64,000 nucleotides of DNA, taken from NCBI GenBank assembly GCA_025594325.1, contig JANHCV010000014.1:62001-126000 (forward strand), in the 5' to 3' direction. The notes beneath the pieces were generated by a model that saw nothing but the letters and a program-made list of their open reading frames with translations, made no database searches and had not been told where the DNA came from. This DNA comes from Blastocladiella emersonii ATCC 22665. Its lineage: Eukaryota > Fungi > Blastocladiomycota. Shown piece after piece: positions 21,104 through 63,064 of this stretch. A program made the position numbers and the translations under genes. Positions within the stretch are counted from its first letter, which is position 1; the number at the start of each line of letters is the position of its first letter.

Positions 21104-22610
21104 TGGGAGTCGAGAGTATGATAATTTTAAATGTGTTGATTGTCCGTACTTTTTACTGTGCTCTGAGCCTCATTGGTGAGAGCGCGAAGCTACGCGAGCA
21201 TTTGAAAATGACGCGTTGCGCCACAACGTGACCTGATCAAGTTTGATCTCTGTCGTGCCTCTGGCAAGAGCGTTTCTCTGCCCCTGTCCAATCAGCGTCA
21301 TGCAAGCTCCGCACCTATAACAAGTTTTCTCCTCCATTCACCTTGCATATCACCAAGGCAGAACTTTTGTACGTCAAAAAGACGTACGACGACCGCAACG
21401 ACGAGTCGCCTTGCCTCGCTCGTCCGCCCCCTGACGCGCTAACCGGTGCAATAAAGCTTCTTTATCATGTTCAGTATCCAGATGCGTTCCATGGAGTTAG
21501 GCCGCTTCATTGGCTCGGTGGCGCTGAAACTTTGCCCGCAGCCAAGCACCGCAAGCAACTGGCCCGTTCTAGTTGGCCTCAACGTTAACTCCTGGCCTGA
21601 GCCCACGCGTGCCTCAACTTTCTCGACGTCCTCAAATCCCGCCAAACACAACAGCAACGTCGACACTGGCTCGCCCGCTGACTCGCCGCCGACTGTCCGC
21701 AACTGCCGTACCTCAGGCCAGCAGTTGGGTAACAGCGGGAACGAGCCGCTCATTGCCATTTTGGGGCGCAAACTCAAGTTTTTTTGCTGGCTTCGCCGCT
21801 AACGAAGCCGTGACCCGGCTTCTGTGCAATCAATCCACCACCCCAAACTGCACCTGCACGGCCGCCCGTCCAGCCTCCGCGACGCGCTTCTTGCGTATTG
21901 CTACCAAATTGGACCGGTCTGATGCAGCTGGTGCCCAAATCGCAGCGCTCTGCGCCGTCCGGCGCACACGCGTTGTCAACACCACGCGTTGCGGACGTGA
22001 CGGGCGAAACAGTTTCGCTTCTGCCTTCCACCACAACCTCGGGTTCGTGTTCATTGCGGCCCCGAATGAAACGAGGCACAGTCGAACGGTGAGAAGCAAG
22101 AGCGCAAGGAACACACTCGTAGTTAGTACCGCCATGGATGGCACTCCAATGGGAATCGAGAACGATCCGTTCATAGAGATTGAGTGAAACCAGCAAGTAA
22201 GCGGTGGACGCGTCGTGCCACAACGCTGCACGATCGGAATTAATCGATGTGTAAAGGATGTTCATGTGCTCGCTTGCTCAAGACTGATATGCACCGCACT
22301 TGCTACGGGCATTGTAGCATACTGCCTGATACGGCGCCAGAACCTCAGGGTCGACGTCAGGTGGTTCGTGCATCGGAATCCCTTCAGCAACGAGTTGTGG
22401 CCCGAAAGTGCAATCGGCGGGAACCCACAAAGTTGTGAGAGTGTGTCTTGGACCGAGGGATGGTCGCGAAGGGGCAAGCCACTCCGCGCGGCGGTCAGCA
22501 TACACGGTGGCGGTCAGCGACACTCCCAGACGCGTTTCCTGCTCTAACTCCTTCCCCTGATGGCCAAAACATGATTTGAGACATGATATGGATAGCTGGA
22601 AGAGCCAAAA

Positions 22611-22693
22611 CGATGGCGGTAGGGTTCGAACCTACGCAGGCAGAGCCTAAATGCTTTCAAGGCATTCTCCTTAGACCACTCGGACACGCCACC
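22611..22693 (-). tRNA. tRNA-Ser(UGA), intronless, long variable arm
   Basis: GGTGGCG/CGCCATC acceptor stem, D-arm TCCGAGTGGTCTAAGGA, anticodon arm AATGC-CTTGAAA-GCATT, variable arm AGGC-TCT-GCCT, T-loop GGTTCGAACCC, discriminator G, followed by TTTT. Confidence 0.97.
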
Positions 22694-22696
22694 GCT
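22680..22696. repeat. Target-site duplication, left copy (TCGGACACGCCACCGCT)
   Basis: Identical 17-mer at 25735-25751; the flanking bases differ on both sides. Confidence 0.93.
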
Positions 22697-25600
22697 GTGC
22701 GTCATGCTCAACGACCCCCCCCGCACGGCGTGCCCGCGCGCTACGAGCTCGGCATCCTCCAGTTCCAGACGCAGTGCGCGTTCTCGCCGCTCGAGCGGCC
22801 CGACCTCGCGCTCGTGCCCATGTCCAACCAGCTGCCGTGAGTGTGGTTTGACAACTAGCTGCTGCTCATGCAGCGGCGCAAGATGTCGATCGTGGACCGC
22901 CGCCGCGACTACAACCTCATCGTCGCCGGCAACTGCACGCCCACGGTCCTCGTCGCGCCCGACGTGACGGTGCGCGGCAAGAGGAGCCAGGACCGCGTCT
23001 GGACCAAGAACTTGATCCGGTGGCTGCCCCTGTACACGCTCGAGACGCTGCTCGAGTACCTGCCCGACAACGACGACGGCCTCATCGGGCGCAAGTACAC
23101 GCTGCCGATGCTCCGCCGCATGGAAACCAAGGACGTGCAGCAGCTCGTCAAGGAGTTCCGCGTGCCGCTCACGGACAACGGCAACGCGCGCATGAACGCC
23201 GACGACCGCAGCGTCGCCCGGATCCTGCTCGACGTGGCGAACCGCAACCACGCCCAGATCACGGCCATCAGCCACGGCCAGGAAATGTACCCGCCCGCGC
23301 TGCCCATGGACGACGATCCGCCCACGCCCGCCGGCGCGCCGGCGCTCGTCTTCCGCCACACCCGCCCCCGCCCCGCCGCCGCGCTCGTCAATCCTGTCCG
23401 CGCCGTTGGGTTCGAGATCATGCCCACCCCGGGCAGCGTCGTCATCGCGTACACGGACGGTTCGTACTACGTGGACCGCCCGGGCCCCGAGGGCGTCGCG
23501 CGCGCGGGCTCCGCCGCCGTGTTCCCGCTGCCCGACGGCTACGACACGGCCACGCGCCACGACGCTGACTGCCGCGCGGCCGCCAACGGCGTCACGGACG
23601 ACGACGTGGGCCACATCGCCGCCGCCAAGCTGCCGCCCGGCCCGTTCTCGTCGACGCGCGCCGAGATCCACGCGTTCGTCCTCGCCGTGTCGCAGGTCGC
23701 CGCCGGGACCGCGCTGCACATCTACTCGGACTCGCAGGCCGCCATCGAGGCCGCGCGCACGCAGCTCTCGCCGACGGCGACGATGCGCCAGCGCGTCCGG
23801 TGCGCGTCGAGCGACCTGTGGTCCGCGCTCCGCCTCGCGCTGCGCGACCGCAACGTCAAGGTCACCTTCTCGTGGGTCCGCGGCCACGCCGACGACCCGA
23901 CCACGCCCAACAACATCGCCGACCGCGCCGCCAAGGCCGCGGCGAACCAGCCGCCCGCCTCGGACGCGTACTTTTCGAAACGCACGCGCACCGAGTCGGA
24001 CCTCCATCACGTCCCCGCCTTTTTCGACCACGAGATTTGCGGCGACCCGCGCAAGTTCATGCGCGACCTCGCGCAGGCCGAGTGCCGCGACGCGGTGCTC
24101 GCCGAGAACGTGGCGCACCTCGCGCTCGCGCCCGAGCCCGTACCCGTACCCGTCGCCGCCGATGCTGCAGCCGCCGCTGTAGCAGCCGCGAACGCCGCCG
24201 CCGCCCAGGCCGAGGAGCTCGACTGGGAGGCGACCGCGCTCGCGCTCCACGGCGGGTCGCGCCCGCTCGCGCGCCGTACCTCGCGCGACCAGAACAAGGA
24301 GACGTCCTTCCGCCTGCGCGCGCTCGCCAACAAGCTGCCGTGCCGCGAGTCGCTGCACTCGGTCGGCCGCATCGCCGTGCCCAACTGCGGCAGGGCCGAG
24401 TGCATCGCGAGCGAGGACCTCGAGACCCGCTGCCGCACGTGCCGCGAAGCGCTCGACATGGCGCCCCGCTGCTCGTGCCGCCAGGTGGACACGCCGTTCC
24501 ACTGGTTCCAGTGCCAGCTCATGGACGGCAAGCGCGTCGAGACGCTCGACCAGATCACCAAGTCGTGGCTCGGCCAGCTCACGTCCGTCGGCGCGGCCAA
24601 GCTCGACGCCGCCCTGAACCCCGCCGCCGGCGTGCTGATCGACGCGCTGCTCGGCCCCGACCTGCTGCACCTGCAGCGCCTCGACCTCGGCGAGCTGCGC
24701 GCCGACCGCGCCGCGATGCTCGCCGCTCGCGTAGCGGCGATCCCCAGCTGGGTGGCCTCGCGCCACGCGGCAGTAGCGGCCGGCCTGCCGATCCCTGGCG
24801 AGGACGCGCTGCCGCCCGCTACCACGCACATCCCCGCCGCCGCCGCGGCCCGCCTGTCCGCCTGCGCCATCACGCGCGGCGCGGTGCATGCGTGTCGCGA
24901 GTTCCTGGGCAGCCCGGCCGCCGCCGCCGCCGCGACCGCGCTCCACCCGCTCCCGTCCCCTCGCCGCCTCGCCGCTCAGCTGTACGACGCCGCCGCGTCG
25001 CTGCTGCGCTCGTGCATGTGGGTGCCGTACGTCGGGCTCCAGACCATTGCCCGGGTCCAGACGCCGCACCGCAACGCTCGGTACCGCCGCCGCCGTACCG
25101 AACGAGTGCGCCCGCTCGCGCCGACGCGCCAGTGCCGCCGCGGTGAGGCCCGCGACCAGCCGCAGGGCCAGGCCCGCGCCGAGACCCGCCAGCAGCGGCG
25201 CCGGCCGCGCCCGCAGCAGCCCCAGCTGCAGCCGCAGCTGGGCAACGCCGGCGACGGGGACGAGGACGAGGACAAGAACGAGGACGAGGACGAAGACGAC
25301 GACACCCGCCGCCAGCGGTGCCAGACGTGCGCGCGGCAGCCCGCCCGTCACAACCAAGACCGATCCCGCATGATCTCCCTGATCCACGGGGCGGTCCTGC
25401 GCAAGACCATCAACGGCCCAATTGCGCAAGACGACGCGTCGGAAACTACTATCGAATCAAGTCGGGTGGACCTCTGAAGTTCTTCATGTCAGCCCGCCGA
25501 GGGGGCCCCCACGCTCGCCTGATCGCTGAGCTCGCCCGGCGCGACGTCGGCGACGACTCACTGCGGCTCCGCCGCGGCTGAGCCACCCGCCGCCGCCGCG

Positions 25601-25734
25601 TCGCGTGGGCCTGGCGCGCAGGAGAGTGCCCCTCGACGGTCAAGGTCGCTCGTACGCGTCTCCAGCGCGTGTGTCCGCATACTGTTGTCCCTCCTTCACG
25701 GTTCGATGAGCTTCTTACATATAATCTTGTTCTT
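22697..25734 (+). mobile_element. 5'-truncated non-LTR retrotransposon (RNase H plus CCHC zinc knuckle, no RT/APE) inserted in the tRNA-Ser 5' end
   Basis: ORF 22868-25477 has RNase HI motifs AYTDGS, STRAEI, IYSDSQAAI, SWVRGH, NIADRAAK, then FRLRALANKLP and CSCRQVDTPFHWFQC. The same frame extends 5' to about 22712 through two stops. Bounded by a 17-bp direct repeat. Confidence 0.85.
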
Positions 25735-25751
25735 TCGGACACGCCACCGCT
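25735..25751. repeat. Target-site duplication, right copy (tRNA-Ser nt 1-14 plus 3 upstream nt)
   Basis: TCGGACACGCCACCGCT; its reverse complement AGC-GGTGGCGTGTCCGA equals the tRNA 5' end. Confidence 0.93.
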
Positions 25752-26826
25752 CTTGATTTCTCATACTTACTATGCGCTGCCGTTCAATAAATCATCTTGT
25801 GACACTCATTTGATGCCTCACCGTACCTTTTGGGCCGATCGTCGGGTGGAGAGCGCGAATCGTGCGGCCTCGGATCGCCATGGCCACTGATAATCCAGCG
25901 TGCTTCCACGCGTGGTTTCAGTCGAGCTGGTTGGCCCCCTTGCGCTGCTCCTCTGCCCATTGAGCATGTCTGGGGCGTGACGTTTGTGAAGAGTTCATTT
26001 CCGTGCCCGAACTGCAAGCGTCGTGCGGTTATGAGCCACGACGGCGCGACAACCAGAAGTTAGTTGCAGCGAGCCGCACAAACTACCTCTCCTCCTTCAC
26101 ACAATGTCTCTCAGCCTGTCTAAGGGCGGGACACACAGCTTTTACCTAATAACACGTCTTTTTTTCCAGTCGCATTCGACGGATAGGTTTCCCCTCGCGG
26201 CAGCGACAGTGGAGGCAAGGCAGTCCTGCCTCGCAGCGGTCACGTGTTTTGAACGACGCGTCCCCTCCCTTCACGTCCCAAGTTCCACGACCGCACACTC
26301 GATGCAGAATCATTTAGAAATCACACATCGAGTGGTGTGGCGCTATTAGCGCGGTTAATTCCTGCCACGCACCACGATCATCCCGCGCATGGCTCCGTAG
26401 GTGTTGGGCGAGATTTTGGCCGACGGCAACGTACGCGATATGCTATTAATCATATGTAGAAGCCTGTCAACTGCCGTCTCTTCTTGATAGAAGTCAGCCC
26501 TCGGAATTACGGAAGAAATCGTCGGTTACCGTTGCCTTTACTGTTCCAATCCTGGACAAGAGCCATCGGGTCATTCGGATTGGCAGTGAGAGAGTGACAG
26601 TAACGTACTTGACAAACAGTAGAGCGTTCAACTTTACTGATAACCACACGCAGTCATAGTTTTTACCGTTCAAGGGTAGCGAAGTGCCGGACAGCAGCTG
26701 TTCAGGCGCGAGATAAATATGCGGCCTCCCCGCTGCCGTCGCCGAGATCCTCAGCAGTCTCGACTACAAAAGCTCATCCTACCCACTACTCACCTACCCA
26801 CCACTTACCACCACCCACCACCTACC

Positions 26827-61048: not shown

Positions 61049-63064
61049 ATGGAACACGTACCAGGACCCAATTTATGTAACCTGCCCAGCAAGATCTTGC
61101 AAAAGATCGCTTTGCGAGTGATCGGCTCGAAGCACATCTCGGGGACGATTTGCCCCTCGGCTATCGCGCTCTCCCGCGTGAGCCGCGAGTATCACGAGAT
61201 TATCATGCTCGAGTTCGCCAGGTTTGTCTATTTTGGCGATTGCACTCTCACGGACGACGGCGGTCTGGTCTCAGAGGAATTCACCCTCACTCGTCGCGGG
61301 CTGTATCCCAATGCCGGGGACAGTGAGTTGCCTGGTTCTGCCCGCTTTTCCATTAATGCCGCGCTTGTTCACACCATCTGTCTCTCATATTCCGGAGCGA
61401 AATCAAGCGATCCAGCATGCCTACCCACCATCGCTGCCCTGTGCGATTTGCTGCGTCGTGCAACCAGACTGCAGCTCCTCATGCTCAATGGATATGAATT
61501 AACACTTCGTAACTTGGTCGAGCTGGTTGTGGACCGCATTCCGACCATTTGCTGTTTCCTCGGTGCGCAAACGACTTGGTCGCGCTTGACAACCTCGATT
61601 TTTCAAAGTACGACCAGTTTCCAAATTGTTGTAAGCCATTGCAGCGTTCCCGAACACGAGACTGATGAAGACCGCGCTCCTGCATGTGCCCTGAGCGACT
61701 TTTCGTTATCGCTTCCAGCGGTCGAGTCTCTGTCAATCGACATCGACGACATCACCGACACAGCGCTGAGAACGATTTTCACCGCGTATCCATTGCTGAC
61801 GAAGCTGTCGCTGAAATCCCAACCCGCTTACGCTTTCTCCATGCCCTTTACTTCCATGACTGCGCTCCAGTGCGGGTGCACCAAGCCATGGAATATCGTG
61901 CTTCCCTCTCCCCTGCATCACCCTAAGTGCTTGTATCTTGGCGTCAACCTTTACTCGCTCTCGCTAACCGAGTTGTTGTACTTGACGGACCTGTCGGCCG
62001 ACGTTGTCCCGACCGACAAGGAATTATCTTGCTTGACCTGTCAAGGGCTCTCGGCACTCCGAATCGCGGTATACGCGGCTCGCCAAGGCAACATCGACCT
62101 TTTCACCAGATTTGTGGCCCTCATTTCCTCCCATGCACCAGATCTCATCACGATGAAGGCTCGCAGCTTCTTTTGGTGGTTCCTCTCCCGTGAGATACAA
62201 GAGTTTGTGCACGAACTAGACTTGGAGAGACCCGAACTGTGGGACATGACGTTCATCTCGTTCGCTAACCATTTGTTCACTGTTGCCGTCGCCAAGTGGA
62301 ACCTCGAGTTGATTCGCTACATCCGCGATTCTCTGCTTGGTGTCGATCCGCAGTCGCTCGCCCACGCCTTTGGACCAAATTACTTGGCATCGCTGGCGCT
62401 GAGTCGCATTCCGTGCAACGAGGGTGTGTCCGCGGCCGAACTGTTACTGACGCTTGACTATCTTATCGATTCGCTCAAGCGGGGTCCGCTGACCACTCCG
62501 CTGGGCAAGCACTTCGCGGCGCTGCTGAGCGCCTTTGAGACCCCGGAGCTGCTCTTCCACGCCGCTCGCCGCCTTCCTGAACGCATTTCACAAGACCTCA
62601 CCGACGACGATCGTGCACAATCGACAAGTTTATCGCCGTGGACGATTTGGACGCGCTGGTCAATTTTCAGCTCTCAACAACCTTGCGTGGGGGTACATTC
62701 TGCTTATGGGCTTCAGCCAGGATGGGGGCACTGGAACGGGAGCGCTCTCGACCTACGTTGCGAACTGCCTTGGCATCGATCTCGCATGCGCGTTCTTGCA
62801 AGGTGAGTAAGCTTGGCCTATCGATTACTGACGCTGCTCACCATTCTCACTACATTCGCTCCGCTTGCGTTCTGGGCGTTGGTCCCTGATGGCGCGCTTG
62901 ATGGCGTCAAGGACGCGTCCTGGATTGCGGCTATGCTTGCCAAGCACCAGCGCGAGTCGCCAGAGGTGACGGCTCTTGCTATTGAAAAGGAGCTCCGCCG
63001 CGTCGAGCCGCTGGCGACCAAGTCGCCCGAGTTCCTTGCCGTGGCCAAGGGCGGGTCTCAGTAA
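61049..63064 (+). pseudogene. Chimeric gene D: family-2 N-terminus, family-1 middle, broken intron, duplicated tail of paralog C
   Basis: Residues to about 62040 match E and F. From ALRIAV...QGNIDLF onward it matches C (AVAKWNL, LAHAFGPN, HFAALLSAFETPELL). Frameshift about 62620-62670; donor GTGAGT at 62803; the inverted repeat begins at 62864. Confidence 0.75.

Follow-up and report, generated by a model that had tools for sequence, protein, structure and literature searches.

A truncated retrotransposon inside a tRNA-Ser gene of Blastocladiella emersonii and the strong, nonexclusive preference of its family for that site

How can a 3-kb mobile element lie inside a tRNA gene that is nevertheless complete? 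The question is raised by a 64,000-nucleotide stretch of the fungus Blastocladiella emersonii ATCC 22665 (contig JANHCV010000014.1, forward-strand positions 62,001 to 126,000), which as a whole is called the window here and to which positions refer unless another contig is named. The source genome is a 32.65-Mb assembly, and the family census reported below covers this one strain. An earlier reading of the window, made from its letters only (the sequence-only reading), had noticed that a 17-mer, TCGGACACGCCACCGCT, brackets an element with RNase H and Cys/His features inserted in the 5' end of a tRNA-Ser gene. A search of the window returned two exact matches to the 17-mer, at 22680-22696 and 25735-25751 on the plus strand; with up to two mismatches allowed, shuffled sequence yields a mean of 0.07 matches. 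The 3,038 bp between the copies (22697-25734) have a G+C fraction of 0.70 to 0.77, compared with about 0.58 outside. Rfam places a tRNA on the minus strand at 22611-22693 (RF00005, 54.8 bits, full model, 1-71), and ARAGORN calls tRNA-Ser(tga) at 22610-22694, one base too long at either end relative to Rfam. This tRNA-Ser(UGA) is the sole tRNA in the window. With nucleotide (nt) 1 at 22693, the 17-mer covers tRNA nt 14 to 1 and the three bases upstream, in agreement with the sequence-only reading. All pairs of the acceptor stem form, and the discriminator G at 22611 is followed directly by TTTT, an RNA polymerase III (Pol III) terminator at 22607-22610 on the minus strand that reads as AAAA on the plus strand. 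Judged by these features, the occupied gene has kept an intact structure. The tRNA/element junction is spanned with 0 mismatches by a short-read contig of the same sample.

The left copy of the repeat is the tRNA-proximal one, while the right, distal copy is an orphaned piece of the tRNA 5' end (nt 14 to 1 with three more bases). Beyond the latter lies the original upstream flank of the tRNA (25752-25981, plus strand), shifted by 3,055 bp and 74.6% identical to the flank of a second tRNA-Ser(UGA) locus on contig 1. Two further points of the sequence-only reading are borne out, that the tRNA was left complete and that its flank was moved by about 3 kb. At the 5' junction, the CT that closes the left repeat agrees with element-internal sequence as well, a 2-nt microhomology or ambiguity, and could belong to the element. 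The conservation between the two tRNA-Ser(UGA) loci extends upstream of the tRNA within 25752-26268, where at least 230 bp and a separate 90-bp block are 75 to 79% conserved; the flanks of tRNA-Ser(ACU) genes have an AT-rich pattern loosely similar to this region. The conserved region may represent an upstream element of the promoter or an ancient repeat unit.

What is the inserted element? It carries a residual 869-codon open frame on the plus strand (22868-25477), in which Pfam identified RNase H only (E = 6e-13, at about 23576-23944). A Cys/His-rich motif downstream of it (24341-24514) was read by eye and has no Pfam match, and the C terminus of the frame is of low complexity. In an alignment to the longest relatives, which lie near the ends of contigs 19 and 5, the window copy starts just downstream of the reverse transcriptase (RT); thus, it is 5' truncated and has lost the RT. 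Near its 5' end are two in-frame stops and a 1-nt deletion, so the copy is dead. The longest relatives encode RVT_1 and then RNase H in one open reading frame (ORF), with Pfam E values of 4.4e-16 and 9.7e-9 in the contig 19 copy. The best PDB sequence matches of the RT are the RTs of R2 and L1 ORF2; all PDB sequence matches were to generic RT and RNase H. Eight copies share a 3' end, which in the window copy reads ...CTTGTTCTT, and 5' ends fall at four internal points; the copies are flanked by target-site duplications (TSDs) of 9 to 18 bp and have neither long terminal repeats (LTRs) nor terminal inverted repeats. The window element is therefore a non-LTR retrotransposon, or long interspersed nuclear element (LINE), inserted through target-primed reverse transcription (TPRT). 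An RNase H domain after the RT and, beyond it, a Cys/His motif (seen by eye) make up the architecture of the I group and of Tad1-like elements; a motif of this sort occurs at the C terminus of LINEs with an apurinic/apyrimidinic-like endonuclease. The earlier view of a LINE antisense to the tRNA with a true TSD is upheld.

The copies were counted by comparing the last 335 bp of the element, together with a pattern for its last bases, with the genome. Copies with this tail occur at only eight places, which represent seven independent insertions, since two copies on contig 17, identical in their flanks, form the two arms of a single inverted segmental duplication. Ten more matches to the tail-end pattern and nine more matches to the TSD 12-mer were rejected as chance, having neither tail nor tRNA. 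Four copies, each 5' truncated at a different point, are of the window type, which we call E2. Three copies are of a second type, E1, of 3.6 kb and with a body unlike that of E2, and one diverged short copy of 241 bp is of a third kind. E1 encodes only an ORF1-like protein of about 1,100 residues, spread over two overlapping frames, in which a part with a CCHC knuckle is followed by an Ala-rich, coiled-coil-like segment; the frame split could reflect a mutation, an intron, or a programmed frameshift. E1 copies at 2,107,880-2,111,469 of contig 1 and 387,434-391,016 of contig 17 are 97 to 98% identical and have no RT. E1 and E2 have about 100 nt of 3' tail in common, at about 87% identity; in the window this conserved module, which also occurs in the diverged short copy, occupies 25644-25734 (plus strand).

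Where did these copies insert? Four of the seven independent insertions lie at an identical position, between A14 and G15, in three different tRNA-Ser genes. The window E2 copy occupies one tRNA-Ser(UGA) gene (acceptor stem GGTGGCG) with a TSD of 17 bp. A second tRNA-Ser(UGA) gene, on contig 1 (acceptor stem GATGGCG), carries an E2 copy with a 16-bp TSD and, between the tRNA and that copy, an E1 copy with a 14-bp TSD. The order at this tandem double insertion is tRNA, E1, 16-bp stub, E2, 16-bp stub, original flank. The fourth insertion is the contig 17 E1, in a tRNA-Ser(ACU) gene, with a TSD of 16 bp. All four elements run antisense to the tRNA, with a TSD that begins at the complement of A14. 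Acceptor-stem and upstream bases in each TSD are those of the local gene, and the duplicated bases are therefore derived from the target rather than carried by the element. The other three insertions are an E2 copy at 739 kb of contig 17 (TSD of 16 bp), an E2 copy at 292 kb of contig 5 (a slightly decayed TSD of about 16 to 18 bp), and the short copy at 1,480 kb of contig 17 (TSD of 9 bp). Scans of the non-tRNA targets with Rfam (E up to 10) and ARAGORN revealed no hidden RNA gene. Thus, with three of seven insertions outside tRNA genes and Rfam families, the element is not strictly site specific. TSDs start with TCGG at all seven sites and with TCGGA at six. On the nicked strand, every site reads TCCGA or GCCGA before the nick and G after it, and the tRNA sites are alike over GTGTCCGA before the nick and GTGGT after it.

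The use of tRNA-Ser genes follows the same sequence. TGTCCGAGTGGTCTAAGG occurs three times in the genome, in two intact tRNA-Ser(UGA) genes, both occupied, and in a truncated paralogue; two further TGTCCGAGTGG sites on contig 20 proved not to be tRNAs. Six tRNA-Ser(ACU) genes are of the TCCGA type, and a single event accounts for the two of them that are occupied. Tail-family copies are absent from tRNA-Ser(AGA) and from a second ACU type, both of which read CCCGA at nt 10 to 14, and the eight tail copies adjoin none of the other tRNA genes examined. If TCCGAG sites, of which there are about 21,400 genome-wide by extrapolation from the window, were used uniformly, at least four of seven insertions in the nine tRNA-Ser sites of this type would have a P of about 1e-12. 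The targeting of tRNA-Ser genes is real and is a strong preference, not an absolute one. Of the sequence-specific tRNA targeting anticipated by the sequence-only reading, with tRNA nt 1 to 14 at the 3' junction of each copy, the part that stands is the shared tRNA-Ser position of four insertions; its exclusiveness does not, as the flanks of the other three are of non-tRNA origin.

Unoccupied counterparts of these targets are present in the same strain. On contig 1, a 3'-truncated, uninterrupted tRNA-Ser(UGA) paralogue (L043) has a 5' end that runs straight into the flank lying beyond both elements at the occupied contig 1 locus, and the predicted empty site of the window is collinear with it in an alignment. 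Likewise, four uninterrupted tRNA-Ser(ACU) genes (L063 to L066) bear the flank that has been moved away at the occupied locus of contig 17. The empty site predicted earlier, a tRNA 5' end joined directly to the flank, is accordingly seen in these paralogues. The public reads comprise four runs, all of one sample and stored as contigs, among which there are no RNA runs and no joint that skips the element. As to the layout of these paralogues, the flank of the occupied tRNA-Ser(UGA) gene recurs 6.2 kb away (contig 1, 2,098,950-2,105,243, including L003/L011), inverted and joined to the 3'-truncated gene, to which Rfam gives no score; tRNA-Ser(ACU) genes also occur in inverted pairs with identical flanks.

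Taken together, these data favor the following interpretation, to which we assign a probability of about 0.8: the window holds a dead, 5'-truncated LINE, APE-type (apurinic/apyrimidinic-like endonuclease) and I/Tad1-like by homology, that integrated by TPRT into tRNA-Ser(UGA), and its family has a strong, sequence-directed, nonexclusive site preference. Under this model, the first nick would separate A14 from G15 on the tRNA-sense strand, within the A box and D-loop, and the nicked 3' end (...GTGTCCGA) would serve as the primer from which cDNA is copied, starting at the end of the element RNA. The primer, ending in TCCGA-3', could pair with UCGGA following ...UUCUU at the RNA 3' end. The second strand would then be cut 14 to 17 nt away, 0 to 3 nt upstream of tRNA nt 1, and fill-in would duplicate nt 1 to 14, placing a complete tRNA with both internal promoter boxes beside the 5' end of the element and leaving an inert 14-nt tRNA stub 3 kb away. 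A nick between nt 14 and 15 of the tRNA-sense strand, as the sequence-only reading had proposed, is in keeping with TPRT geometry, the orientation of the element, and the TSD. At the contig 1 tandem, the intact gene would have been reused and older copies pushed outward, although the order of events may have been the reverse.

The proposed site determinant is TCCGA followed by G, which would extend to GTGTCCGA followed by GTGGT in the occupied tRNA-Ser genes. Its recognition could lie in a sequence-specific endonuclease or in pairing of the primer with a UCGGA(CACG...) RNA 3' end; we give these roughly equal odds, and they are not mutually exclusive. In the pairing version, the RNA 3' end would include read-through target sequence from a master copy residing in a tRNA-Ser gene. 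In the R1 element R1Bm, target sequence read through at the 3' end of the RNA is reported to determine the precise junction, and the model proposed for the UCGGA end of the B. emersonii element would be analogous. The 3' tail module is probably the part of the RNA that is recognized for priming. E1 and E2 share only this tail, yet they are targeted alike, which suggests that E1 is mobilized in trans through it. The consensus fold of the tail is a weak, largely invariant structure, and the 10 matches of the conserved tail core in a metagenome scan were all due to chance. Within the tail, GCGTGTGTCCGCA (25659-25671) is similar to the 5' portion of the target tRNA in the sense direction (GGCGTGTCCGA) and might anneal to UCGGACACGC, a 3' end extended by read-through; the sequence is not kept in the diverged short copy, and the similarity may be due to chance.

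Several considerations weigh against this interpretation. The three non-tRNA insertions have only TCCGA or GCCGA followed by G in common with the tRNA sites, and the sample is small, seven insertion events in one strain. The exact nick position in the tRNA targets, within the shared homology, is placed by the TPRT model. Finally, no family copy in the assembly has an endonuclease domain, so the nicking enzyme and its specificity are deduced indirectly. Exo_endo_phos was found in no reading frame of the longest copies (contigs 19 and 5), and a genome-wide tblastn search with the APE part of a related protein, P0004, detected APE only in other LINE families of the genome. The full-length copy with an APE or a restriction-like endonuclease (RLE) plus RT that the sequence-only reading had proposed to look for failed to appear in the assembly, where the longest copies carry RT and RNase H only; copies on contigs 16 and 4 are truncated within shared subtelomeric repeats. 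Truncation of every assembled copy is the likeliest reason for the missing APE, and in this strain the family seems to be extinct. The nearest proteins outside the genome (P0004 and P0005, from metagenome contigs) are 38 to 40% identical and carry Exo_endo_phos (PF03372) and RVT_1, one of them also RNase H; the contigs that encode them contain no tRNA and no similar tail. An RLE, as in R2, NeSL, or CRE elements, finds no support: the C-terminal 500 residues gave no nuclease match by Pfam or PDB sequence search, and the relatives carry APE. By homology, we place the family among the APE-type LINEs with RNase H, I/Tad1-like, the clade placement being tentative; similar fungal protein clusters (RT plus RNase H, some with APE) are a lead only in that respect.

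Could the position instead be set by the Pol III machinery? Tethering to TFIIIB or TFIIIC, as for TRE5-A or Ty3, would place insertions at a fixed distance from the transcription complex, and the position does resemble the published 2 to 6 bp of the Dictyostelium purpureum element NLTR-A (PMC5006619). However, the only tRNA genes used are tRNA-Ser genes with TCCGA at nt 10 to 14; the CCCGA types described above were spared, and so were the other tRNA genes examined. The three non-tRNA sites, moreover, have the same motif with no Pol III gene nearby. Insertion at any isotype, at a position set by distance, was not what we found. That the tRNA genes used all belong to a single sequence class within one isotype, together with the motif at non-tRNA sites, favors sequence recognition, and tethering is quite unlikely.

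Another possibility is survivorship, in which insertion is random or merely biased to TCGGA and only copies adjacent to tRNAs escape purging from a compact genome. Three copies do lie elsewhere, and tRNA-flanking DNA is a classic safe haven. In addition, the TSDs at tRNA sites are all at least 14 bp, which is what rescue of the tRNA needs, and shorter staggers may have been selected out, the 9-bp TSD being at a non-tRNA site; with n = 4, the long TSDs may reflect either selection or a preferred stagger. Survivorship cannot, however, account for four insertions at one and the same phosphodiester bond in three genes, and many of the TCCGAG sites are in noncoding DNA. We consider it very unlikely.

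Alternatively, a single ancestral insertion beside a tRNA-Ser gene could have spread by segmental duplication or gene conversion, with no targeting at all. The genome is rich in inverted segmental duplications, the contig 17 pair with identical flanks is one of them, and the flanks of the two tRNA-Ser(UGA) loci are homologous. The junction sequences contradict this account. The window E2 copy is 418 bp longer than the contig 1 E2 copy (3,038 versus 2,620 bp), and the elements are 97.3% identical compared with 74.6% for their flanks; the different truncation points and TSDs, together with these identities, indicate separate insertions after the two loci had diverged. TSD lengths of 17, 16, 14, and 16 bp, each with the bases of its own locus, point the same way, as do E1 copies that are full length and that occupy both UGA and ACU tRNA-Ser genes. 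Spread of a single insertion is accordingly most improbable. Finally, that the 17-bp repeat arose by chance or belongs to the element (3' transduction), to which TCGGA after the tail in nearly all copies might formally be ascribed, has next to no chance of being right, as bases 6 to 17 vary by locus and match the local target on both sides, unoccupied paralogues have a single copy, and the non-tRNA site at 739 kb of contig 17 has TCGGA in its upstream TSD copy too.

Site-specific APE-type LINEs are familiar from the R1 clade (R1, TRAS, and SART), which nick their targets sequence specifically, are near-absolute specialists for arthropod ribosomal DNA or telomeric repeats, and disrupt the target unit. 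Among elements associated with tRNA genes, NLTR-A is a LINE of D. purpureum found 2 to 6 bp upstream of tRNA genes, a specificity that its authors described as not observed before (Spaller et al. 2016, PMC5006619; review, PMC5911963). Both it and the B. emersonii elements, which end 0 to 3 bp upstream, are LINEs with RNase H downstream of the RT. NLTR-A, compared here by description only, is reported for tRNA genes in general, whereas only TCCGA-type tRNA-Ser genes are used among the tRNA genes of B. emersonii. Furthermore, the B. emersonii TSD puts the first nick inside the gene; the NLTR-A text and supplement searched mention neither a TSD nor an in-tRNA nick (PMC5006619).

The sequence-only reading had held that known tRNA-associated retroelements insert only next to tRNA genes, which is incomplete: NeSL-1_TV (tRNA-Pro), LIN15_SM (tRNA-Arg), and LIN25_SM (tRNA-Glu) are LINEs that insert sequence specifically within tRNA genes (Kojima and Jurka 2015, PMC4640811). 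They resemble the B. emersonii element in sequence-specific insertion at a defined position in tRNA genes of one isotype. The NeSL clade, however, has a restriction-like endonuclease, in contrast to an element of the RT-RNase H type with APE-bearing relatives. In the tRNA-Arg example (S6 Fig, PMC4640811), the 3' end of the element is followed by the anticodon arm and the tRNA 3' half in the same orientation, which reads as a mid-gene insertion, whereas the B. emersonii element is antisense and its long TSD restores the whole tRNA. Dada-tS fish DNA transposons target nt 8 to 13 of tRNA-Ser (and tRNA-Leu), followed by AG (Kojima 2022, PMC8869645). They use the same part of the same isotype, a convergent use of the conserved D-arm and A box, but they are DDE cut-and-paste transposons with 6- to 7-bp TSDs (PMC3706591) and not retroelements. 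TRE5-A and TRE3 of Dictyostelium and Ty3 of yeast also treat tRNA genes as safe havens and keep the host gene intact. By contrast, it is contact with Pol III factors that fixes their position (TRE5-A ORF1 binds TFIIIB, PMC5911963); they insert tens of base pairs away or at the transcription start, and their targeting is described for tRNA genes generally rather than for a single isotype. In B. emersonii, insertion depends on sequence and lies inside the coding sequence. We found no papers on B. emersonii retrotransposons. LINEs within tRNA genes and a LINE just upstream of tRNAs are already known; what appears to be new is the gene-sparing geometry, and an antisense, TSD-regenerating insertion by an element with an APE-type relative, in a blastoclad fungus, appears undescribed in the literature searched.

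More distant copies and further tRNA genes were noted along the way. About 20 more distant copies of the element have another 3' end and lie mostly in subtelomeric duplications. About a dozen relatives are 91 to 93% identical to the window copy up to position 24971 and then have a different 3' end. They are located some 5 to 100 kb from contig ends, inside shared subtelomeric duplications and in both orientations: at 2,007,340-2,017,170 of contig 19 and 1,367,852-1,377,396 of contig 5; at the starts of contigs 2, 6, and 21; at about 35 kb of contig 17 and about 96 kb of contig 1; and near the ends of contigs 3, 4, 15, and 16. No telomere repeats were present at the two contig ends read (contigs 19 and 5). 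ARAGORN with Rfam alignment identified at least seven tRNA-Ser genes with anticodon ACU, at 254.8, 258.0, 387.4, and 409.2 kb of contig 17 and at 463.9 and 508.5 kb of contig 3 (L062 to L066), as well as at 1,202.5 kb of contig 1 (L084). Anticodon ACU is unusual for AGY codons, for which GCU is normal; if A34 were deaminated to inosine, this tRNA-Ser would also read the Arg codon AGA. On contig 14, at 500-1,400 (L083), five tRNA genes (Ser-AGA, Leu-AAG, Pro-AGG, Glu-TTC, and Leu-CAG) lie within 800 bp.

As a broader generalization, which we hold tentatively and at somewhat short of even odds, a fungal APE-type LINE and an ORF1-only partner may home to the D-loop of tRNA-Ser genes in an isotype-specific manner. 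Their stagger, of at least 14 nt, would be matched to the distance between the nick and nt 1, so that each integration would rebuild a functional tRNA, a self-healing safe harbor on which insertions could stack outward as at the contig 1 locus; this might also explain the position of NLTR-A. These findings would add Blastocladiomycota and tRNA-Ser to the list of hosts and targets of target-specific LINEs, and they provide a testable mechanism for the published, unexplained integration position of NLTR-A. The only intact TGTCCGAGTGGTCTAAGG-type tRNA-Ser(UGA) genes found in the searches made, two in number, both carry an insertion. Should there be an active master copy, its endonuclease or RNA 3' end could guide the engineering of gene-sparing, site-directed retrotransposon integration. 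For the family itself, the interpretation favored here would mean that a LINE can make use of a position within a small essential gene and still not destroy it, with the TSD, usually a by-product of integration, doing the repair.

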